Shown: one piece after another, positions 15,638 through 63,403 of the stretch
How positions within the stretch are numbered: the stretch's first letter is position 1
How the letters are laid out: every line of letters begins with the position of its first letter
From: Gekko japonicus
Taxonomy: Eukaryota
Length of the DNA: 64,000 nucleotides
NCBI RefSeq assembly: GCF_001447785.1
Contig: NW_015167086.1
Coordinates: 62,001 to 126,000 of the forward strand
Reading direction: 5' to 3'
The notes under the pieces: model-generated
Database searches by the model: none
Told to the model about the DNA's origin: nothing
The model's input: only the letters and a program-made list of their open reading frames with translations
Made by a program: the position numbers and the translations under genes

Positions 15638-15845
15638 CTGAAGATTTCATTCAGCGAGAACCAGCTGGAGAGGACCTTCCAGTACCCATCGGAGGGTTCC
15701 CTGCTGGAGGAGTTCGGCCCCCCTGAGGAGTCAGAGACTTTGGTGTCTACCAACCCCCATGGGGACGAGGAGGAGGAAGAGGAGGAGCTGCTGATGCTTC
15801 ATCGTGGCCTCCCTGGCCTATTGAGGACCAAACCCCTCATCGTGG
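15638..15845 (+). CDS. PPP1R18: Phostensin (PP1 regulatory subunit 18), penultimate coding exon
   Basis: ctgcag acceptor and GTGAG donor. Translates LKISFSENQLERTFQYPSEGSLLEEFGPPEE...EEEELLMLHRGLPGLLRTKPLIV, matching the phostensin C-terminus including the KISF PP1-docking motif. Synteny upstream of DHX16 as in the MHC. Confidence 0.93.
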
Positions 15846-17918: not shown

Positions 17919-18333
17919 CTGCCCAACTAGAGTTATTGTCCTGTACGGTCTGCATACAAGGATGAGGAATTAAAATAAGCCTTGGTGAAAAAGCTGTAGA
18001 AACTAATTCAAATGTAGATCCCAGGAAACTGCCCTGGGGATGGGTGGGAATTGTGCTTGTCAAGCTGAAGCAAAGCTGTGCATCTAAATGTTAGAAATAA
18101 AGAAGTTTTGTTTTACAAACAGGCCCTTGCAATGCAATCCTAAGAATCACCCTCTTCTAAACCCACTGAATTCAATGGGGTTTAGAAAGGTCGATTGTTT
18201 AGGAGGGCCATTGGAAGCCGATATTGGAGCTCCATCTAGAGGCCCATCTTGAGAACTGCAGTGACTTTTGGAAATCCTCGTACCTAAGGTTTGGGGAGAG
18301 CATTCAAGTAGGCTTCTTGGGCTTCCTTATTAG

Positions 18334-19257
18334 CAGGCCCGTAGCCAGGATTTCTTGTGTCGAGGGGGCCTTTAAATTTCTCGGGGACGCCTAATTGATT
18401 TGGTTAAAGTAAGTTAAATTAAGTGCCCCTTTCACATAGCTGCATTTGATGGCCTCCTCCTCTCCTTCCCCACGCCATTCTCCCTTCTACAGGGGCCGGA
18501 AGGCAGGTGGGAAGGTGAGGCAGTGGAGGAGTGCGCCTGTGCACACTTGCCCACTAAGAGGCCCTTCAGCCAGCCAAGGCTGAGCGCGGCCGGCCTAGGA
18601 CAGAGCGCTGCTGCACCCGCCTCATTTTGTCTCCGCTCTCCTCCACTCTGTTCGGCGGAGGCGGTGCTGCTGTTTTTCCCCACCCCCTCCCCCCCCCCCC
18701 CCCTAACAGCAGCCGTAGGCCAAGCCCTGGTAGTAGCCACCGCTACGCACGCCTCGTTTTACCCCGGCCAGCTGCCTGCCCACCATGGCCTGCGTGGGGC
18801 AGGGCTGCTCATTTTTCATTGCATATATTCATACAGGCGGCCATCCCGGGAAGAAGCGCTGCTGCTGCAGCTGCCTCGTCTCCGCTCTCCCCCACACGCT
18901 CCACCCTCTGCTTGGCAGCAGCGTCACTGCCGTCTTTCCGCCCCCTCCCCCGGTAACAGCAGCAGCAGACCAGGTCTGGGTAGCAGCCGCTGCTGCTGTG
19001 TGCACCTCGTCCTCCCCCAGCCAGCAGCCTGCCCACCATGGCCCGCGTGGGGCTGCTGGTTCTTCATTGTGTGTATTCGTACAAGTGGGGCTGCTGGCAG
19101 GTGGAGAAAGGGGAGTCCTCTGGGCAGTGGCGGCGAGTCCTCTGGGCAGCGCTCAGAGTCGGGGGGGCCTGGGCTGTGTAGGAAGTCACTGGGGGGGCCT
19201 GGAAGGAGGTTGGGGGGCCAGGCCCCCCAGGAGGCCCCACTGTTGCTGCGGGCCCTG
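18334..19257. mobile_element. GC-rich non-autonomous hAT-type DNA transposon
   Basis: TIRs caggcccgtagc / gctgcgggccctg; 8-bp TSD cttattag; absent from the paralogous site in repeat A' (~22573). Confidence 0.88.
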
Positions 19258-19323
19258 CTTATTAGTGCCTCCATCCCCTTTTTACCCTGACAAGCCCGGT
19301 TTTCTTTCTGTCTTCCTTCCCAG

Positions 19324-19343
19324 ATGAGTCTTGTCGGCGGTAA
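19324..19343 (+). CDS. PPP1R18: Phostensin terminal coding exon (DESCRR*)
   Basis: Polypyrimidine tract plus CAG at 19321-19323. The phase-1 join G|AT GAG TCT TGT CGG CGG TAA gives DESCRR-stop, the known phostensin C-terminus. Confidence 0.92.
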
Positions 19344-20108
19344 CCCCACCCGTCCTTCTCCGTCACCAGGAAAGATGGAGGATATTTAAGGATTCATGTC
19401 AACCTTCAAGTCCCTCAACTGGACTTTTATGTCCTTTCGTCTTCCACTGACTCTTACACCAGGGAAAGAAGCTGGGACCATGCCAGACTGGACCGTTTTG
19501 CCCATTTTCCTAGGGCTCTGGGTGTTTCTCTCTTCACGATGGGAGAAAGCGCTTGAAAGACACCTTCATCGATATTGTTGTTCTATCTCTAGCACTGAAA
19601 AAGGGACCTCAGAAACTCCCCCACCCGAAATCTAAATGGCAAGGATCTGGGTCACGTGACAGGCTGCCCAATCTAACCTGTACAAAGAGACTGCATCCAC
19701 ATGGTTTTGACTGAAAGGAAATCTTTTTTTCTTTCTTATCCTGATGCTAAAACAACTTAGGAACAAAGAGGTTAAAACAGCCAGCAGGGCGGAGCAGCAA
19801 ACCTCATGCCCGTCTGCCGGCCTCCAGCGTTGCAGGCGATCCCCAGCCAAGGGCTGATTTCTCCTTGCTGTTTCCCAAACACAGCCCACACTGGGTGGAG
19901 GGATGTTTCTAATTCCCAGATCAACCTTTTTGTAAAATCCTTTAGGATCCTTGTCAGATCAACCTTTTTTGTAAAATCCTTTAGGACCCTTGTCATTTTA
20001 AAATTTTCTAATCGCTGCCATGTTGTGGGAGGGGAGTTGGAGGGGGGAGGGAGGGACTAGCTTGGGGGGGCGGGGCCATTTCTTTCTTTCCCGTTAATTC
20101 AGAACATA

Positions 20109-20114
20109 TTTATT
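20109..20114 (-). terminator. RIOX1 polyadenylation signal followed by decayed poly(A) remnant
   Basis: AATAAA on - about 20 nt after the stop; GAAAGAAAGAAA follows at 20090-20079. Confidence 0.7.
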
Positions 20115-20132
20115 TTGTTCATCCATGACACA

Positions 20133-21953
20133 TTACGCAGAAAACAGAGGGCTCTTAGTAATCAGCAATCCCTTTTCAAACAAAACAGTGGCTAAAGCAA
20201 TCTTATCATCCAAGGTGACACATGGAAGGTCTTCCACACTGACATACTTCGGGTAAGAAGAGAGCAAGAATTCAATACCATCTGTATATTCTGGCTCGAT
20301 TTCACAGTACTTGGGCTCCTCCTTATGATACACCCTTGAATTTTCTGCGGTGTAATACAGCAGTGTTTTGTCTCCTTCGTTGCACAGCCTGACGATTCCA
20401 TACCGAAGCAACCGTACTTGCGTATTTTCACTGAATGGGACGTCGACGTCTCGCACGTCTCCATTCTCCCACCGGGCAGGAAGTCCATATACACTGAGCG
20501 TCTTTTCAGTCTCAGTCAGCACTGGAGGGAGGCAGTCGTGGAAGAAACCCTTGGCTTTTTGATCCACCGCAGCGTCGACTGGTGCATAGTTCATTAGTTT
20601 AGTGATCAAAGTCTGGACCTTTTTCATAAAGGCGGTTCTGCGAGGATCAATCACATCGGAGTTCACGACTCCTGTGTATGCCAGGTAATCTGTAGGGAGA
20701 CCCTGGCGGTATTCCACATCCTCCTCAATGGCCATCTGCAAAGCTGCAGGAAGGAGTTTTTCCAACAAGTCTCCCCAGGAGTTTCTCTGGAACGAGGAGA
20801 CAGTTATGTGGAGTGAATGGGCATCGGGGAGGCAGTCCCCTTGATGGATAAACCCCCGTGGAAAATACAGCAGGTCCCCAGCCTCTAATACGGTTTCCAG
20901 AACCGGCTCCCCGATCTCCTCCTGAGCAAAGTTGGGGCTTGAAAACTGGGGCAACACCTCCGCTTCTTTCCGAGGGCTGTAAACCCGCCAGTGCTTCTTC
21001 CCTTCGAGCTGGACGACAAAGGCTTCGATGTCGTCATAATGAGGAGCAAAGCCCTGAGTGCCGGCAGGAGTCAGGTAAGTGTTGGCTCCGACCATGCTGC
21101 CAAACTGCTCCTGCAAGAGAGACAGGAAGTGCCAGACTGTGGCAGAAAAGGCCTGGGGGTTCAGCATCCTGAGGGAGCAGCCGTTCCGGTAGAAGTCCCA
21201 CACCACGGCCGGCAGGGCCCTGCCCAGCGGATTGTGCGTCTCCCTCTTCCCGTCTTCGTAGCTAGTCACGTCCAAGTTCACACCGAACTGGACCTCTTGG
21301 TCGCGCAGGACGGCATCAAACTCGGCCGTGGAAAAGAGCCCCTGGTAGTAAGCCGGGTTGCGCCGGCGGATGAGGAGGGGCTTCTTCTCCCAGTGCTGGC
21401 CGAAGAACCGCTGTGAGGAGACGGGGGCGATCAGCCACTCGAAGAGCCTGGCTGCCTTCTCCCGGCTGTGCTGGACCTCCCCCAGCTCCTGAAGGAGGTG
21501 CCGGAGCGAGGGGCCTGCCTGAAACTGCTGGGCAGAAGCTCGCTCCTTTTCCTGTCCCGCCGCTGGTGGTGCAGCCGCAGCCGAGCAACTTTCGCCCGCC
21601 ATCGGACTCCGTTCACGGTTCTCCTGCAGCGCCACTCTTGGGCCGGATGAGGTAGCCACAAGACGAGAGCGCAGTTTCATCCTCCGTCTCTTTGCTAGCT
21701 TCGCTGCTGCAGCATCCACCACCGTCGGGACAGGATGGGAGTCTAAGGGATGTTCCCCATTGGCGGCCCCTGAAGGAACGGGGCAAGCCCCGGGTGTTCG
21801 CCTCTTAGTACGCCGTTTCTTTATCTTCTGGCTTCCGGGGGAGACAGTCGGGCTGTGGGCTAGGCAGGGTGGCTGCTCATGTGGACCTCCACGTGGCGCC
21901 ATTGAACGGTAGGCAGAGAGAGCAGACACAGGTGCTCTCCGCAGCTCCTCCAT
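20133..21953 (-). CDS. RIOX1: Ribosomal oxygenase 1 / NO66 (JmjC histidyl hydroxylase), single-exon CDS, probable retrogene
   Basis: 606-aa uninterrupted ORF. JmjC motifs are intact: YLTPAGTQGFAPHYDDIEAF (HxD), GKKHW (2-OG Lys) and GFIHQG (distal His). The C-terminal dimerisation/winged-helix region ends LATVLFEKGLL. Confidence 0.96.
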   Translation of the reverse strand: MEELRRAPVSALSAYRSMAPRGGPHEQPPCLAHSPTVSPGSQKIKKRRTKRRTPGACPVPSGAANGEHPLDSHPVPTVVDAAAAKLAKRRRMKLRSRLVATSSGPRVALQENRERSPMAGESCSAAAAPPAAGQEKERASAQQFQAGPSLRHLLQELGEVQHSREKAARLFEWLIAPVSSQRFFGQHWEKKPLLIRRRNPAYYQGLFSTAEFDAVLRDQEVQFGVNLDVTSYEDGKRETHNPLGRALPAVVWDFYRNGCSLRMLNPQAFSATVWHFLSLLQEQFGSMVGANTYLTPAGTQGFAPHYDDIEAFVVQLEGKKHWRVYSPRKEAEVLPQFSSPNFAQEEIGEPVLETVLEAGDLLYFPRGFIHQGDCLPDAHSLHITVSSFQRNSWGDLLEKLLPAALQMAIEEDVEYRQGLPTDYLAYTGVVNSDVIDPRRTAFMKKVQTLITKLMNYAPVDAAVDQKAKGFFHDCLPPVLTETEKTLSVYGLPARWENGDVRDVDVPFSENTQVRLLRYGIVRLCNEGDKTLLYYTAENSRVYHKEEPKYCEIEPEYTDGIEFLLSSYPKYVSVEDLPCVTLDDKIALATVLFEKGLLITKSPLFSA

Positions 21954-21982
21954 GCTTCAGGTCCGGATGTGGAGACTGAGAG

Positions 21983-23362
21983 AAGCTGTGTATCAAAATG
22001 TTAGAAATAAAGAGGTTTTGTTTATTTGTTTTACAAACAGGCCCCTGCAATGCAATCCTAAGAATTACCCCCTTCTAAACTCACTGGCTCAGAAGTTAAG
22101 GCGCTGAGCTGCAGACCAGAAAGTCTGTAGTTCGGCAGTTCGAGACCCGAGTGCCGCGTGACGGAGTGAGCTCCCGTCTCTGGCCCCAGCTCCTGCCAAC
22201 CTAGCAGTTCAAAAGCAAGAAATTGCAAGGAGATAAAATAGTGGGAAGGTAACAGTGTTCTGTGCAACTCGACGTTTAGTCATGCCGGCCACATGACCAT
22301 GGAGAATTCTTCGGACAGTGCTGGCTCTTCGGCTTGGAAACGGAGATGAGCACCGCCCCCCCAGAGTTGGATGTGACTAGCTTTCAAGCAAGGGAAACCT
22401 TTACTAAATCCACTGAATTCAATGGGGTTTACAGAGGTTAACTGTGTAGGATGGCCATTGGAAGCCAATATTGGAGCTCCATCTGGAGGCCCATTTTGAG
22501 AGCTAGAATGACTTTTGGAAATCCTGGTACCTAACGTTTGGAGAAGAGCATTAAAGGGGGCTCTTGGGCTCCCTTATTCATGATTTCCTCCCCCTTTTTA
22601 CCCCGATAATTCCTGTTTTCTTTCTGTCTTCCCTTTCTAATAAGTGTTGTCAGTGGTAACCCCACCCATCCTTCTCCATCACCGGGAAAAATTGAGGCTA
22701 TTTAAGGATTCGTGTCACCCTTCAAGTCCCTCAAACTGGACTTTTGTCTTCCACTGACTCTTACACCAGGGAAAGAAGCTGGGACCATGCCAGACTGGAC
22801 CGTTTTGCCCATTTTCCTAGGGCTCTGGGAGTTTCTTTCTTTACGATGGAAAAAAGCATTTGAAAGACACCATCTATATTTTTGTTTTAACTCCAGCACT
22901 GAAAAAGTGACCTCAGAAACCCCCCCACCCGAAATCTAAACAGCAAGGATCTGGGTCACGTGACAGGCTGCCCAATCTAACCTGTACAAAGAGACTGCAT
23001 CCACATGGTTTTGACTGAAAGGAAATCTTTTTTTTTTCCTTATCCTGATGTTAAAGCAACTTAGAAACAAAGACATTAAAACAGCCAGCAGGGCAGAGCA
23101 GCAAACCTCATGCCCGTCTGCCGGCCTCCAGCGTTGCAGGCGATCCCCAGCCAAGGGCTGATCTCTCCTTGCTATCTCCCAAACACAGCCCACACTGGGC
23201 GGAGGGATGTTTCTAATCCCCAGATCAACCTCCTTTTTTTGCAAAATATCTGGGAGTTATCCTTTAGGACTCCTGTTATTTTAAAGTTTTCTAATTGCTG
23301 CCATGTTGTGGGAGGGAAGTTGGAGGGAGGAGGGAGGGACTAGCTTTGGGAGGGGGGGCAAT
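21983..23362 (+). repeat. Direct repeat copy A' with decayed PPP1R18 terminal exon
   Basis: Second copy of 18073-20080. The acceptor and coding part are degenerate at ~22637-22659 (ctaataagtgttgtcagtggtaa versus ccagatgagtcttgtcggcggtaa). Interrupted by a Sauria SINE. Confidence 0.92.
22087..22403 (+). mobile_element. Sauria SINE
   Basis: Full body with ACCTTT tail; ~12-bp TSD ctaaactcactg/ctaaatccactg; absent from repeat copy A. Confidence 0.88.
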
Positions 23363-24799
23363 TTTGGTGGCCAACAACCTATCAGTATTGGGGACGGATC
23401 TGTACCAAGGATGGTGGACGGGGTATTTCTAACAGTCTTTTTAAAATGCCGTTCTGGAACAAGGAAATTCCAAATGGTATGGCTATCTGGGTTGTTACAA
23501 CCAAGTAACAGTTGGTATTAAGGCATAGAAGTGGGCAAACATGGACTACAAAACTTGTGTTTAGAAGTCAAGAAAGGGAGGCAGCTGGGTGTGGAGACGG
23601 CAAACAACCAAGTGGTCTTTGCCCCACCCACTTCCTGTCTGGCATTCAGAACTCAAAACAGGATTGGACAAGTGGGCACGAAGGAGAGGGTGGGACTGAA
23701 TGGATAAGCAGAGGCAGGTTGAATGTTAGAAAATGGACTGGTATCTTGACATACTTTTTAAAAAAAATGATCATTCACTGTAAATGAATGTTAACCATTC
23801 CTCACAGCATGGCATTCTGAAGTAGGGAGGGGGCAAAGAGAGTAATTTAGAGAAGGCTTTTAAAAAAAATGTCAGCATGCACAGCAGTCACAACAACTGG
23901 AAATACTGACATTCAGGACTTTGAGGACTCTCGGACAAGACAGTGCATTCAACCAATGGCGGGAACAGCTCAGATTCCTCTGTGCCAATGACTCAAGCCC
24001 AGCCCCTGGCGAACAGAACAGTGTTCTGGAGGTGTAGGGGCAAATAGGCCAATAGGCAGTGGCAAGCTTGGTCATGACTAAAACCAGGTCATGTGGTGCT
24101 ATCATCTGAAGGTGGTACTCAGTTTCTTCGAACAACCTCACCCCATCCTTCTGCTGGGATCAGAGCCCTGTCAGCCACCCCTCCACGCGTGCGACTCTCG
24201 TTCTGCTGAAAACACACAACCACGCTGGAAAGGTCAGATCCAAGGGGCAGTGTTTCTTAAACGCCTATCCGGGAATCCCCCCACCTATGAAACATACGTG
24301 TCTTGTGGAAAACTTGTGTTCGATGGCTTGTGGGAAAAGGGTGTGAGAGCGGACGCAGACTGTGAGGACGGAGGAGCGATGAATGTATGAGAGGAGAGAG
24401 TTGTGACTGTAGGAGCACCAGGGGTTAGTCAAAATGTGGGGGGCAGAGTGTGGACCGAGCAAGAAGCATGAGTGAGCGGATGAAGGAAGTGCAGAGGGGA
24501 AGGCACAAAGAAAACGGTGTGTTTCTTCCCTCTTTCCTTCCTTACTAATTTATCTTGTTACCTGTGCACAGTTTTTATTATCTTCCCCCCCCCTTCTTTT
24601 GCACTGTGGGAACAGCCGTGCCTACAGCCCGGGAACAAGTCAGCGAGAGAATGACTGGGCATGGCAGACATCTCGTCCTCTTACAGAGGCAGAATGGAGC
24701 CTTGCCCGGATCAGTGTACGTGAGGGGAGGGCTGAAGCAGCTGTGTCCAGCCATTTCCATCAGTGTTTTTTTATATATATTATTATTATTAATAATAAC

Positions 24800-24805
24800 A
24801 ATAAA
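24800..24805 (+). terminator. Candidate ancestral PPP1R18 polyadenylation signal
   Basis: AATAAA after an AU-rich tract, at the end of the unique sequence that continues from repeat copy A'. Confidence 0.5.
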
Positions 24806-25149
24806 TCAGAATGATGTTGCACGCTGATTCACCTTGTCTGCTGTGTTGTATCAGCCATGATAGCCAAACAGACTTCCATGAGCAGAGACAATATGCCTTT
24901 GAATGTAAGATGCTAGGAGGAAACAACAGAAGATTGTTGCCTTCAGCAGTTCACCTGTGCAGCTCCGAGAGGCGTCTGTACTCACTGCCGGGAACTAAAT
25001 ACGTTAACTTTGGTGTGCCTGAGGAGTGCTTTTATCTTTATTCATTGTCTTTACAGCACTCTGCCAAGGGGGAAGAGCAACCTCTCTTGAGTTGTGAAAC
25101 CACAGAAGGGCCAAAAGGCCATATCCTGCTTCAACACTCAAAGACTGTG

Positions 25150-27240
25150 CACTGGAACAGTTGGTCACAGAACCAACGAGAGGGGTGGTAATCCTGGACT
25201 TGGTTATGAGCCAGGCTCAAGACCTGCTGAGAGATGCAGACGTTGCTGCACCAGTTAGAAACAGTGACCACAATGCTATTTAATCAATGGAAAATTACCC
25301 CCTGAAGTCCAAAACTGTGACTTTTTATTTCAAAAGAGGGAACCTTACAAAAATGAGGGAAATAGTTAAAAGGAAGCTGAAAGGGAAACACAAGAGAGTC
25401 AAATCCCTAGAGGATGCCTGGAAGCTACTTAAAACTACACTAATTGAGGCCCAGATAGAATGCATTTCACAGGCTAGGAAAGCCACTGCCAAGTCTAAAG
25501 AATGCCAGCATGGTTAACAACAGAAGTCAAGGAAGCTATGAAAAGTAAAGAGGCTTCTTTTAAAAAGTGAAAGGTCTGCCCCAGTAAATTGAATGAAACG
25601 GACCACAGGCTCTGGCAAAAGAAATGTCAGTCGATAATCAGGCATGCAAACAGTGAATTTGAGAAGCAGGTTGCTAGAAGCATCAAGAAAAACAGTAAAC
25701 ATTCATTTAAATATATCTGGAGCAGGAAACCAGCCAGAGAAGCAATGAGCAAAGAATAAAGGGACTGCTAAAGGATGACAGGGAGATGGCAGAGATGCTC
25801 AATTAATTCTTTGCTTCTGTATTCACTGTGAAAAGTGTGGGGCTTGTACCCATGCCACAGCCACTATTTTCAGGAAGGGAGTCTAACCCAGTACTGAGTC
25901 AAAAAGTCCTGCCTCACCAGCCTTTTGGAGTTCTTTGAGAAACTGAACAAGCATGTAGAAAATGTTGACCAAGTAGACATTATATACTTCGACTTTCAAA
26001 AGGCTTTTGATAAGGTATCTCACCAAAGAGGACAGGTTCTCTTAAGGATTAAAAACTGGGAAAGAAGACGGGTTCCCTTAAGGATTAAAAATGGGTTAGA
26101 TGATTGGAAGCAAAGAGAAGGGGGGAAATGAGCAGTTCTCACAGTGCAGGGAAGTAAGCAGTGAGGTCCCACAAGAATCAGTATTTTATTTATTAATGAT
26201 CTTTATGAATGATCCTTATTTAGGGGTGAGTAGTCAAATGGCCAGATTTGCAGATGACACAAAGTTATTCAGGATGTTGAAAACCAAGGATGACTCCACA
26301 AACTGGGTGAGTGGGCAGCAATGTGGCAAAAGTGCAATGGTGGTAGATGTAAGGTGATGCAAATTGGAACAAAAAATCCCAGCTTCTGGTAAAGGCTAAT
26401 GAAGTCTAAACTTGCTGAGACTGAGAGGAAAAAAGAACTTGGGGTTGTAGTAGATAGCATAATGAAAGTGTCAATCTAATGTGCTGCAGCAGTGAAAAGG
26501 GCAAACTCTATATTGGGTATTATTAAGAAAGGGACTGAAAACAAAATGGCCAATGTTATGATGCCCCTGTATAGATCTATAGTGCAGCCTCCTTTGGAGT
26601 ACTGTGTGCAGTTCTGGTCACTGTATTTCAAAAAGGACATTGCAGAGCTGAAAAAAGTACAGAAGAGGGCAATCAGAATGATTAAAGGATTAGAGCACCT
26701 TCCCTATGAGGAAAGGCTGAAGAATCTGGGACTCTTGAATTTAAAAAAGAGACAACACAGGGTGTGTGTGTCATAGGATAGAGGTTTATAAAATTATGCA
26801 CAGGGTGGAGAGAGCTAACAGAACTTTTTCTCCCTCTCCCAAAATACTAGAAGTCAAGGGCAGTGAATGAAGCTGATGGGGAGTAGATTCAGGATCGACA
26901 AAAGGAAATAATTCTTTACAAAGCAAATGATTAAAATGTGGAATTCGCTGCCAGAGATGTAGCGATGGGCACAGGCATAGACAGCTTTAAAGGGGGATTA
27001 GACAGACTCATGGAGGATACATCTATTAGTTACTACTAGCCATGGTGACTAAAGGAAAACTCAGCGTTCACAGACAGTAAACCTTTGAATCCCAGAGCCA
27101 GGAAGCAACATCAGCACAAGCCTCATCCTCTATGCTGTATTGCTGGACCTCCAGAGAAACAGGTTGGCCACTGTGTGAGACAGGATGCTGGATGAGAAGG
27201 ACCACTGGTCTGATCCAGCAGGGCTCTTATGTTATGCTCT
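25150..27240 (+). mobile_element. Degraded CR1 LINE (ORF2 and 3' end)
   Basis: Fragmented RT motifs DFQKAFD, FADDTKLF and LEYCVQFWS; CR1-type 3' tail. Confidence 0.88.
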
Positions 27241-27439
27241 TATGCTAACACAACAGTGTTCACCTCTCAGTCCCCCACAAATTAAGTCATGCAGTCTTCA
27301 ACCATAGTTTGCCACAAGAAGAGAACAAATGTTCAACAGAACATCAGGGAGGGGCCCTGGCTCAGTGGCAGAGCACCTGCTTCAGATGCAAAAGGTCCCA
27401 GGTTCAGTCCCCAGTTCCTGCAGTTAGAGGATGCCAAAT

Positions 27440-29630
27440 GCTTTCCTGATAGGCTCCTGTGCCTTCTGTGTCCCTTGTGGAAAGTGGGGGACATGTATGC
27501 ATGCCACAGACCCTATTTTCAGGAAGGGAGTCTGAAGAACTGAGCCAAATTGAGGTGACCAGTGATGAAATTCTAAACCTACTGGGTATATTAAAAACTG
27601 ATAAGTCTCCAGGTCTTGATGGCATACACTGAGAGTACTTAGGGAACTCAGTTGTGAGATAGTTGATCTACTAACCCATATAGGTAACCTATCACTAAAT
27701 TCAGCCGCTGTACCAGAAGACTGGAGAGTAGCAAATGTGCCACCAATTTTTCGAAAGGGATCCAGAGGCGAACCAGGAAATTACAGGCCAGTCAGCCTAT
27801 CACCAGTCCCAGGCAAATTAGTATAAACTGTAATCAAAAATAGAATTGTTAGGCACATAGAGGAACAAAGCCTGCTGAGGAAAAAATCAACATAGCTTCT
27901 GCAAAGGTCCTGCCTCACCAACCTTTTGAAGTTCCCCGAGAAACTGAACAGGCAGTGACCCAGTAGATATTATATACTTGAACTTTCAAAAGGCATTTGA
28001 CACGGTACCTCACCAAAGATTCCTGAGTAAACTTAGCAGTCATGGGATAAGAGGATGGGTTCTCCTATGGATTAAAAACTGGTTAAATGATGGGAAGCAA
28101 AGAGTAGGAATCAACGGACACTTCTCACAATGGAAGGAAGTAAGCTGTGGGGTCTCACAAGGATCGGTACTGGGGCCAGTACTATTTAATGTATTCATCA
28201 GTCATTTGGAACTAGGGCTAAGTAGTATAGTGGCCAAGTTCGTAAATGACACAAAATTATTCAGGATCATGAAAACCAAGGCTGGCTGTGAAGAACTCCA
28301 AAAGGACCTCCACAACCTGGGTGAGTGGGCTACTATGTGGCAAATGAAGTTCATTGTTGGTAAGTGTAAGGTGATGCACATTGGGACAAAAAATCCCAAC
28401 TTCAAGTATAGGCTAATGGGATCTGAACTTGCTGAGACAGGGGAAAGGATTTGAGGGGGTCGTAGTGGATAGCTCAATGAAACATAAGAACATAAGAGAC
28501 ACCAATGTTGGATCAAGCCAAAGGCCCATCCAGTCCAACACTCTGTGTCACACAGTGGTCAGAAATACCAGGTGCCATCAGGAGGTCCACCAGTGGGGCC
28601 AGGACATTAGAAGCCCTCCCACTGTTGACCCCCCCCCCAAGCACCAAGATGACAGAGCATCACTTGCCCCAGAGCCCCTATCTATACCTTGTGGCTAATA
28701 GCCACTGATGGACCTCTGCTCCATATGCTTATCTAATTCCCTTTTGAAGCCGTCCATGCTTGTAGCCGCCACCACTTCCTGTGGCAGTGAATTCCATGTG
28801 TTAATCACTCTTTGGGTGAAGAAGTACTTCCTTTTATCCGTTCTAACCCGACCACTCAGCAATTTAATTGAGTGCCCACAAAAGTGTCAACCCAGTGTGC
28901 TGTATCGATGAAAAAGGCAAACTCTATGTTAGGGATTAGGAAAGGGATTGAGAATAAAACGGATGATATCGTAATGCCCCTGTATAGATCTATGGTGTGG
29001 CCTCATTTGCAATACTGTGTACAGTTCTGGTCACCATATCTCCAAAAGGAACAAAGGACATTGCAAAGCTGGAACAAGTACAGAGGAGGGCAACCAAAAT
29101 TATTAGGGGGTTGGAGAACAAGTATCTGGGACTTTACAGTTTAGAAGAGACAACTAAAGGAGGACATGATAGAAGTTTATAAAATTATTCTTGGAATGGA
29201 AAGAGTTGGCAAAAAGAATTTTTTCTCCCTCTCCCAAAATACTAGAACTTAAGGGCATTAAATGAAACTGACAGGCAGTAGGTTCAGGATGGGAAAAAGG
29301 AAATACTACTTTACACAGAGAGTGATTAAAATGTGGAATTTGCTGCCAGAGGATGTAGTGATGGCCACAGGAATAAAAAGCTTAAAGGGGGATGTAATAG
29401 ATTAATGGAGGATAAATCTATCAATGACTACTAGCCATGGTGACTGAGGAGAACCTCCACATTCAGAGGTACTAAGCCAGAGCCAGAAGGCAACATCAGG
29501 AGAAGGCCTTGACCTCTATGCCCTGTCGTTGGCTGTCCAGAGGAACTGGTTGGCCACTGTGTGAGACAGGATGCTGGACTAGATGGACCACTGGTCTGAT
29601 CCAGCAAGTCTCTTCTTATGTTCTTATGAA
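27440..29630 (+). mobile_element. Degraded CR1 LINE with nested inverted CR1 3' end (~28481-28880)
   Basis: NYRPVSL-like and FQKAFD...GVSQGSVLGPVLFNVFI motifs; the nested piece is nearly identical to 32570-32952 in reverse. Confidence 0.88.
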
Positions 29631-30154
29631 TAACCAAATGCTGTTCCAGCCATCAAATAGCTTGGAAAAAAGCACCATATTAATAGTTGTTAAAGGCACA
29701 GGAGCGTGTCAGAAAAACAGCTGAGCACCTCTTACTGGCTCCGTTTAGAAGCTGTGTTGGATTTACTGCCTTTAGTTTTGGGAGTTTGATGGCTACATAA
29801 TGGCTAGAAATACAAACAGCAAACTTTTCCCACCATGGAGAGGCAATGATGAGGGAAACGCTTCTTTTGTACTTCTTTACACTATGTGAGGATTATATTT
29901 GTACAGATGGGCCCATTTCAGTTAATGTACCTTGATCAAGCAAGCATCTAGCTTTGTATGGAGAATTGACTTAATTGTGAAAATTTCTCATACAGACCTT
30001 TTCTTCTGCATTAAGGGGGAATAGTAATCTGCCTTGGAAGTTCCTGGGAAGGCTGACAAAATCATAAATCCCTAAAGAAAAGGGCTTTGGTAGGCCTGGG
30101 TTGCAGGTAACCACATTGGCCCAAAGCAAAATCCAAACATACACCATATACATA

Positions 30155-30377
30155 AATCCAGATGGTCAGCCGTATTGGTCTTTAGCAGTGGAATAAATTT
30201 AGAGTCCAGTGACACCTTTAAGAGCAACAAAGGTTTATTCAAGGTATAAGCTTTCGTGTGCAAGGCACACTTTTTCAAATACCATTCCAATGTATTTGAA
30301 AAAGTGTGCCTTGCACACCAAAGCTCATACCTTGAATAAACCTTTGTTAGTCTTAAAGGTGCCACTAGACTCTAAAT
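30155..30377. mobile_element. Inverted pair of Penelope-like element termini (palindrome)
   Basis: ~92-bp arms centred at 30287/30288; same family as fragments at ~1980-2405, 14020-14150, 17590-17705 and 31575-31710. Confidence 0.75.
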
Positions 30378-30859
30378 CCGTTCTACCATATACATAAGAC
30401 AGTGTGCAACCTTTCCAGTTTTGGACGATACACGTGGTAGTGCGGGAAAGCTAGAGTCACATGCGAACTTACTTCAGAGTAAATCCCACTGAATAAAACT
30501 CGTTACTCCCAGTAAATATGCAGCGATGCAGACTGTGTCCGCTTCTTCCTGCTAATACAAACCAAATATTTTAGTGCCACCCACAGCAAGAGAGGCACAT
30601 ACAACTATCACGATAGGTATTTCTGTATTTATAATGAAAAATTGCGGCTCTGTCCTGACGATTACAATGCATAGCCACAGCCAGACCGGCAGGCTCAGAT
30701 TATTTAAACACGTACCGTGGAAGAGTCAAAACTCCACACACCCGCCTTTCCAGTACTGAAGAGTCTAAAGTCAAGCCGGCTGTCCACTCTACTTCTTATA
30801 CAAAACACGCAGGATCTTTCGCCACACCAAGGCATAAAGCATGCATACAAGAAAGTAGC

Positions 30860-31122
30860 CAAGGACCTCCCCTTACCGCCGGAAACTCAAGCTACGTGAC
30901 ACTCTAGCCTTTCACTTCTCTATCGTAAACCTATCTCGCGCCTTATGCCTGTGAGATAAGAATCCGAAACCCGTCCTTTCCCTGTGTCTATGGTTGGTCT
31001 CCAACACCGGAACTTATTCTTTCCGTGAGCTCTGATTGGCTAGGAGAATCACGAACACGAAAGAGCAGCTGCAACGGCGACCGGAAGAAGCCGTTTGGGG
31101 GGCGATTTTGTCCCCCTCAACC
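30860..31122. promoter_or_regulatory. DHX16 CpG-rich housekeeping promoter, possibly bidirectional
   Basis: Several ETS CCGGAA sites (~30879, ~31007, 31081), a CCAAT box as ATTGG at 31035-31039 and TCTCGCG at 30934, directly upstream of the Kozak-context ATG (accATGG). Confidence 0.75.
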
Positions 31123-62687
<31,565 letters not shown>

Positions 62688-63306: not shown

Positions 63307-63403
63307 NNNNNNNNNNNNNNNNNNNNNNNNNNNNNNNNNNNNNNNNNNNNNNNNNNNNNNNNNNNNNNNNNNNNNNNNNNNNNNNNNNNNNNNNNNNNNN
63401 NNN
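63307..63403. other. Assembly gap
   Basis: Run of N. Confidence 0.99.

Follow-up and report, generated by a model that had tools for sequence, protein, structure and literature searches.

Brauer et al. (2018, PMC6006756) found RIOX1 (NO66) to consist of one exon in every mammal and bird that they examined and of several exons in fish and amphibians, and the human gene lies on chromosome 14 (PMC6006756). The intact RIOX1 described here was found between PPP1R18 and DHX16 in a 64,000-nucleotide (nt) stretch of Gekko japonicus DNA (RefSeq assembly GCF_001447785.1, contig NW_015167086.1, positions 62,001 to 126,000). This whole stretch is referred to below as the window and all coordinates are given within it. 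On the evidence assembled below it is probable that the gene is a second-round retrocopy of RIOX1, placed by target-primed reverse transcription (TPRT) with a target-site duplication (TSD) of about 1.1 kb, transcribed from the DHX16 promoter and maintained by selection.

Retrocopies on bidirectional promoters, exon gain by retrocopies and orphan retrogenes have been described in mammals (PMC4772013). In common with the bidirectional-promoter retrocopies (Fablet 2009; Carelli 2016, Fig. 2E-F), the gecko gene starts head-to-head within 2 kb of a coding gene and has new noncoding exons. Its retrocopy body, in contrast, is separated from the promoter by about 9 kb, and its acceptor comes from duplicated target DNA at the edge of the insert. 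With the orphan retrogenes RNF113A, MARS2 and TRMT12 (Ciomborowska 2013, PMC3548309; Carelli 2016, PMC4772013) it shares the gain of a CpG-island promoter, the retention of parental function and the character of a broadly needed, lowly expressed gene. It differs from them in that its parent was itself a retro-derived single-exon gene, hence the second round, and in that the loss of the parent is here presumed. L1 insertions with giant TSDs (Gilbert 2002/2005; Symer 2002; Servant 2017, PMC5223499) have TPRT geometry, a distant second nick and exon duplication in common with the gecko locus; those were cell-culture L1 events, whereas in the gecko a cellular mRNA was inserted naturally, the insertion is fixed and the TSD measures about 1.1 kb. 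The mode of gene movement is thus a known one and involves no new mechanism. The transcript evidence and the spliced 5' exons of gecko RIOX1 are new, and a literature search found no published RIOX1 relocation in geckos or squamates.

The gene was identified from its single long open reading frame (ORF).

20133–21953, minus strand: RIOX1/NO66 coding sequence (CDS), 606 amino acids, intact from ATG to TAA.

Pfam searches placed two domains in the product far above cutoff, JmjC_2 (PF08007, 120 bits, E 4.5e-35) and RIOX1_C_WH (PF21233, 174 bits, E 1.1e-51). Residues 149–603 were aligned to the human NO66 crystal-structure chains (4DIQ) with no gap, and the HxD...H motifs that bind Fe(II) were retained as GFAPHYDDIEAF and HSLH. 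A 606-residue ORF with all JmjC iron ligands, as claimed in the original prediction made from the sequence alone, was therefore confirmed by the ORF itself, the Pfam domains and the 4DIQ alignment. Chains of MINA53 (RIOX2) matched far more weakly (213 bits). The top matches in the protein search were gecko RIOX1 proteins at 93–77% identity (Gekko kuhli 93%, Heteronotia 82%, Eublepharis 78%), followed by lacertids at approximately 75%, turtles at approximately 70% and crocodilians at 64%. In a maximum-likelihood tree of 30 RIOX1 proteins the topology was that of the species tree and the geckos were monophyletic. By protein similarity, then, the ORF is classed as an ortholog of RIOX1, not of RIOX2/MINA53. 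An in-frame TGA lies 6 nt upstream of the ATG, which excludes an N-terminal extension. Amniote RIOX1/NO66 (PDB 4DIQ, 4CCJ and others) has the JmjC_2 and winged-helix domains, the HxD...H motifs, the intronless coding part and a disordered basic N-terminal extension in common with the gecko protein. The product is accordingly predicted to be a normal Fe(II)/2-oxoglutarate ribosomal oxygenase, a prediction that would include histidyl hydroxylation of Rpl8. Unlike the human gene (chr14q24.3, single exon), the gecko gene lies between PPP1R18 and DHX16, has a spliced 5' untranslated region (UTR) and has a promoter in common with DHX16.

Transcription was assessed with three raw RNA-seq runs (X21, X23 and X24) and one contig set (X1), which were mapped on 18850–24849; reads were used at 95% identity or above. 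Depth in X23 was 25–100x over 20050–22049 and fell to approximately zero on either side. A discrete RIOX1 transcript was thereby observed, whose coding exon begins exactly at the boundary of the retrocopy. At 21985/21986, X23 split reads (16 and 5 of them) and one X1 contig, with 173 further letters, leave the local sequence. The consensus sequences of these loose ends matched the window exactly and uniquely at 30473–30502 and 30717–30746, and minus-strand GTAAGT and GTACGT donors stand directly at the 30473 and 30717 matches, respectively. RNA-seq over the ORF had been proposed as a check in the original prediction, and it yielded this discrete, spliced transcript, with the minus strand read from the splice sites. 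The features of the 5' region are as follows.

21986–30472, minus strand: RIOX1 5'UTR intron, about 8.5 kb; a longer form runs to 30715 with the upstream donor.
30473–30548, minus strand: RIOX1 noncoding 5' exon; donor GTAAGT from reads, acceptor 30549/30548 proposed from sequence only.
30716–30812, minus strand: RIOX1 first noncoding exon, donor G/GTACGT; upper end putative.
30717–31400: CpG-rich promoter common to RIOX1 and DHX16, between the first exons of the two genes, CpG observed/expected 0.84–0.88.
31123–31329, plus strand: DHX16 exon 1, coding part, with its ATG at 31123; relatives of the peptide are named DHX16 by NCBI.

The RIOX1 5' exons (donor at 30716) lie head-to-head with DHX16, about 400–650 bp from its ATG at 31123. 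If the 173-nt run of the X1 contig, of which the first 30 letters were seen, consists of exon 2 plus exon 1, RIOX1 starts at 30812 or above. RIOX1 is transcribed from a promoter common to DHX16 and is spliced over about 8.5 kb to an acceptor derived from the target DNA.

The insert itself was delimited by its boundaries with the flanking repeats and by the transcript.

20078–21985, minus strand: body of the retrocopy, a single coding exon in which the CDS is flanked by 5'UTR (32 nt) and 3'UTR (about 55 nt); spanned by a 1948-nt contig of run X1 and outlined by X23 depth.
20109–20114, minus strand: AATAAA polyadenylation signal, 18 nt past the stop, from the sequence.
20079–20092, minus strand: (GAAA)n tract, taken as the decayed poly(A) tail; the repeat number varies among individuals (extra TTTC units in reads).

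Read along the minus strand, the order is right flank, copy B of the flanking repeat (ending ...ttctctcag), 32 nt of 5'UTR, the ATG and ORF, TAA, 18 nt, AATAAA, about 20 nt, (GAAA)n, copy A of the repeat and left flank. From the ATG at 21953, similarity to the flanking repeat starts 32 nt away, at 21985/21986. The (GAAA)n tract behaves as a microsatellite derived from poly(A). Both the roughly 30 nt noted earlier between the ATG and unrelated flank and the AATAAA noted about 20 nt after the stop with an A-rich remnant were thus recovered, at 32 nt, 18 nt and (GAAA)n.

The lack of introns had also been offered as evidence for a retrocopy, and this did not hold, because the parent gene and its mRNA were already intronless (PMC6006756); an intronless ORF therefore says nothing about the gecko event. 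The case for an RNA intermediate is made instead by ends shaped like those of an mRNA, by what is left of the tail and by priming at a T-rich site. Arrival of RIOX1 as DNA, by segmental or repair-mediated transposition with no RNA intermediate, gains some room from the same fact, as an intronless parent removes the usual proof of RNA origin (PMC6006756), and flanking duplications on the kilobase scale are also known from repair-mediated gene transposition. Yet the insert starts 32 nt before the ATG, carries neither promoter nor downstream DNA, runs out in an A-rich microsatellite some 20 nt past AATAAA and has its junction at a T-run on the primed strand. DNA transfer is accordingly regarded as very improbable.

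Self-comparison of the window showed that the 1.9-kb RIOX1 insert exactly fills the gap between two collinear direct repeats, 18073–20081 and 21983/6–23364, and gave no further copies of these repeats within the window. The repeats and the features that they carry are as follows.

18073–20081: repeat copy A; it takes in a portion of the final PPP1R18 intron, the terminal exon in its functional form and some 740 nt of 3'UTR.
19323–19343, plus strand: coding part of the PPP1R18 terminal exon (DESCRR, then stop), acceptor cag/.
21986–23430: repeat copy B, in which the duplicate of the PPP1R18 terminal exon, at about 22640, is dead.
18334–19257: hAT-like non-autonomous insertion, 924 bp, GC-rich, with the 8-bp duplication CTTATTAG and CAGG...CCTG ends, in copy A only.
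22086–22404: short interspersed element (SINE) in copy B, inserted after the duplication; similar copies at 2013–2308 and 45232–45509, and a read pile-up.

The dead PPP1R18 exon in copy B has its acceptor AG changed to TA, and the edge of copy B at RIOX1 provides the ...ttctctcag splice acceptor that RIOX1 now uses. The hAT-like element, just upstream of the PPP1R18 terminal exon, is absent from copy B, and its insertion postdates the RIOX1 event. It carries an internal repeat of about 115 bp (18688–18800 and 18937–19053). The copies are unequal in length because of the later insertions, hAT-like in A and SINE in B. They fit a giant TSD with an original length of about 1.1 kb that copied the PPP1R18 terminal exon. 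A duplication of about 1.1 kb is far beyond the usual TSD of 5–30 bp and within the reported extremes (PMC5223499). TSDs above 100 bp were found in fewer than 10% of L1 events in HeLa cells, and 'extremely large' TSDs, able to duplicate exons, prevail where nucleotide excision repair is impaired (PMC5223499). The duplication at this locus is a rare outcome of a known kind, fixed in nature around a cellular mRNA. Large duplications of this type arise when the second-strand break lies far from the first nick.

Two other origins of the repeats were considered and set aside. Copies A and B as long terminal repeats of an element that captured RIOX1 were rejected, as A has the working PPP1R18 exon and 3'UTR and B its dead copy. 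A tandem duplication first, with the retrocopy landing later at its junction, was rejected as unparsimonious, given that both repeat boundaries coincide with the ends of the insert.

RNA reads over the SINE region (22050–22449) numbered in the hundreds, with very deep contigs and many variant letters; these were read as expression of the family genome-wide and not of the locus.

Divergence between the copies gives the event an age. Copies A and B differ by 112 substitutions and 6 indels in 1028 aligned bp, with Kimura two-parameter (K2P) distances of 0.107–0.156; the intron-derived part of the repeats is at 0.156. Substitutions, indels and later transposable elements in the flanks around an ORF that stayed open had been noted from the sequence, and the 1028-bp alignment, the hAT-like element and the SINE bear this out. 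The intron-removing retroposition must be at least as old as amniotes, since RIOX1 is single-exon in both mammals and birds. An age of some 300 million years is excluded for noncoding repeats that are about 85–90% identical, and so the gecko event differs from the amniote intron-loss event; the K2P range and the private SINE and hAT-like insertions likewise make it far too young for an amniote age. The gecko lineage would then have seen RIOX1 retroposed a second time, from the mRNA of a gene already free of introns. The squamate neutral rate is approximately 1–2 x 10^-9 per site per year. With K of approximately 0.11–0.16 this rate gives an age of tens of millions of years, which would place the event roughly 35–100 million years ago and inside Gekkota.

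Gene conversion could in principle make old repeats look young. The PPP1R18-DHX16 position would then itself be old, squamate- or lepidosaur-wide, with the repeats kept alike by conversion, which is plausible for repeats 3.3 kb apart; their identity is also uneven, 94% over 19567–19866 and 84% over 19270–19418. No tract approaches 100% identity, however, and against conversion stand the K2P of 0.156 in the intron-derived part and the private transposon insertion in each copy. The uneven identity is accounted for just as well by constraint on the 3'UTR that still works in copy A. Non-gecko squamate RIOX1 was found on contigs of 135–459 Mb, many of them apparently the largest chromosome of the species, a weak point against an old position. 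The largest squamate chromosome is the one that we take to carry homology to chicken chromosome 5 and human chromosome 14. An old position with converted repeats is considered improbable, and a gecko-lineage retroposition is retained.

The junctions were also followed in other individuals. The stretch was present in runs from 8 studies of the same species, contigs cross the junctions, and the same junction recurs with extra target nucleotides; an assembly artefact was rejected on these grounds. An X1 contig and X21 reads join 20068 to 23352–23423 and then, after 13–22 letters, return to 20078/20079. It follows that in those individuals copy A is longer by about 85 nt of target, and that the count of TTTC units is not that of the reference. 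The reference haplotype thus carries a small deletion of about 85 nt at 20068–20078, between two ATTT motifs. The nick site is T-rich, TATTTCT/AACAG at 23430/23431 in the unbroken copy and AATTTT/GG in the reference haplotype, and the original nick was most likely at TATTTCT/AACAG, 23430/23431. A T-rich junction had been placed at gcaatttt; its T-richness stands, and the exact site does not, being a feature of the reference haplotype alone that was created by the later deletion of about 85 nt.

Over 18850–24849, most X21 and X24 reads were 95–99% identical to the window, and X23 reads were mostly at 99% or above. Considerable genetic differences seem to exist among individuals under the one species label. 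In eight X21 RNA reads and one from X24, 19931 is joined to 23234, so that the reads pass from copy A to copy B at homologous positions and skip RIOX1. Such a hybrid might come from recombination that gave a deletion allele, from conversion of copy A to a B-like state in the individual concerned, or from a template switch of the reverse transcriptase on read-through RNA.

Whether the gecko gene replaced its parent bears on how far it has moved. Among the best 120 matches there was one RIOX1 per species, three RefSeq-annotated geckos included. Bird RIOX1 was found on contigs of 47–73 Mb, and two finch models of the gene include a fused ACOT-type BAAT_C domain. In birds and human the RIOX1 locus is taken to be of the ACOT/HEATR4 type, with an ACOT-type gene as neighbour at human 14q24.3. 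Bird DHX16 pieces were found on other, small contigs, with RIOX1 and DHX16 pieces from one assembly in the case of Chloebia; the search with the DHX16 exon-1 peptide yielded fragments only, either short Logan contigs or partial bird models. Together the bird and human data suggest that the ancestral amniote position of RIOX1 was not between PPP1R18 and DHX16.

Most retrogenes coexist with their parents (PMC4772013), and the same retrocopy could be an extra one, with a functional parental RIOX1 persisting at an ACOT/HEATR4-type locus. Three results speak against this: no second protein from the window species appeared among those 120 best matches, where each species had a single RIOX1; reads at 95% identity or above showed no mixed CDS positions that would suggest a close paralogue; and the window branch was not accelerated, with a terminal length in the protein tree of 0.039 compared with 0.040 for Gekko kuhli. 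A persisting parent is considered unlikely, if less so than the other alternatives. The RIOX1 of the window is probably the only copy of the species, an orphan relocated retrogene.

Constraint on the ORF was estimated relative to its flanks. At flank rates about 5.3 indels are expected in the ORF under neutrality, with a chance of 0.005 that none occurs, and 2.9% of simulated sequences remained free of stops at 6% substitutions; the ORF would therefore be open under neutrality with a probability of about 0.005 x 0.029, or about 1e-4. Variation across runs comprised 12 CDS variants, 6 synonymous and 6 not (pN/pS 0.31, binomial p=0.045), a weak signal in the direction expected under constraint. 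The gap-free alignment with human NO66 and the short branch in the protein tree agree with this. The CpG observed/expected ratio was 0.65–0.68 in the ORF and 0.29–0.40 in the flanks. These results support purifying selection on the RIOX1 retrocopy. The central proposal of the original prediction, a functional RIOX1 retrocopy between PPP1R18 and DHX16 kept by selection, finds support in the RNA, the intact ORF and the insertion signature.

The following course of events is proposed. In the gecko lineage, mRNA of the intronless amniote RIOX1 gene would have been reverse-transcribed and inserted antisense in the PPP1R18 3'UTR. A nick in the plus strand at TATTTCT/AACAG would have freed an end from which cDNA synthesis began at the poly(A) tail, and a second-strand break about 1.1 kb away would have duplicated the target, the PPP1R18 terminal exon included, on both sides of the insert. 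The promoterless copy may then have been taken up by the CpG-island promoter of DHX16 through one or two noncoding exons (at about 30.72 and 30.47 kb), with the splice acceptor at its 5' edge donated by the duplicated target DNA. The anatomy, the transcript, its splicing and the conservation of the protein are observed directly; from this arrangement we infer in what order the steps took place, that an L1-type enzyme supplied the reverse transcriptase and that the parent was lost.

Several points weigh against the account. That the gene is a relocated, only copy, and the time at which it moved, we infer. The AA after the nick requires acceptance of the 12-nt insertion of the alternative haplotype, and the target is otherwise less canonical. 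The RNA libraries were unstranded, and the strand of the transcript was taken from the orientation of the splice sites, not from read direction. X21 and X24 cover the whole region at low and even depth, and part of their signal is PPP1R18 read-through or pre-mRNA, not RIOX1. The polymorphism test was based on 12 sites only.

A wider proposal is made more tentatively and is, on balance, somewhat doubtful as a whole: that a second retroposition of RIOX1 took place within Gekkota, that the original copy on the ACOT/HEATR4 side disappeared, that a housekeeping enzyme of ribosome modification, antisense in the PPP1R18 3'UTR, has come to depend wholly on the DHX16 promoter, and that the 1.1-kb duplication may recombine, with the 19931/23234 reads representing a possible segregating RIOX1-deletion allele.

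Every stage in the making of a working gene from a promoterless retrocopy can be read at this unusually well preserved locus, which keeps legible together the TPRT junctions, a kilobase-scale duplication that copied an exon, a donated splice acceptor and the capture of a promoter over an 8.5-kb intron. It indicates that retroposition can act once more on an amniote gene that itself arose by this route. Provided that the parent has disappeared, RIOX1 has changed its chromosomal neighbourhood and its regulatory partner with the protein unchanged. For annotators the locus is a warning that RIOX1 synteny is not conserved in geckos.

The flanking genes had been named as PPP1R18 and DHX16 from the sequence, and the Phostensin match and the DHX16-named relatives agree with this. 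The remaining PPP1R18 feature is as follows.

15638–15844, plus strand: PPP1R18 penultimate coding exon, the end of the Phostensin domain (Pfam Phostensin, 28.4 bits, cutoff 25).

This exon terminates at a GTGAGT donor. The original PPP1R18 3'UTR runs through 20081 and then from 23431 to about 24830, with an AATAAA near 24800. RIOX1 lies antisense within this former 3'UTR, about 9 kb upstream of DHX16, and PPP1R18 and RIOX1 overlap in antisense in the gecko. Three X21 reads contain a plus-strand GT..AG intron from 21072 to 22643/22645, whose donor lies within antisense RIOX1 and whose acceptor is a cryptic one in the dead PPP1R18 exon of copy B; at least some PPP1R18 transcripts therefore run antisense through RIOX1. 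The last exon of DHX16 ends near 62684 on the plus strand.

Inside the RIOX1 5'UTR intron, a reverse-transcriptase segment of a long interspersed element is present as two adjoining copies, about 80–88% alike, at 25800–29740 (RVT_1 at 27978–28454). A coiled-coil ORF at 57297–57740 on the minus strand is a candidate L1 ORF1-like sequence; a Pfam search with it gave no significant family. A run of 97 N at 63307–63403 marks an assembly gap or a mask. At 42540–43607, two overlapping ORFs of 217 amino acids on opposite strands encode near-identical proteins, which indicates an inverted duplication.

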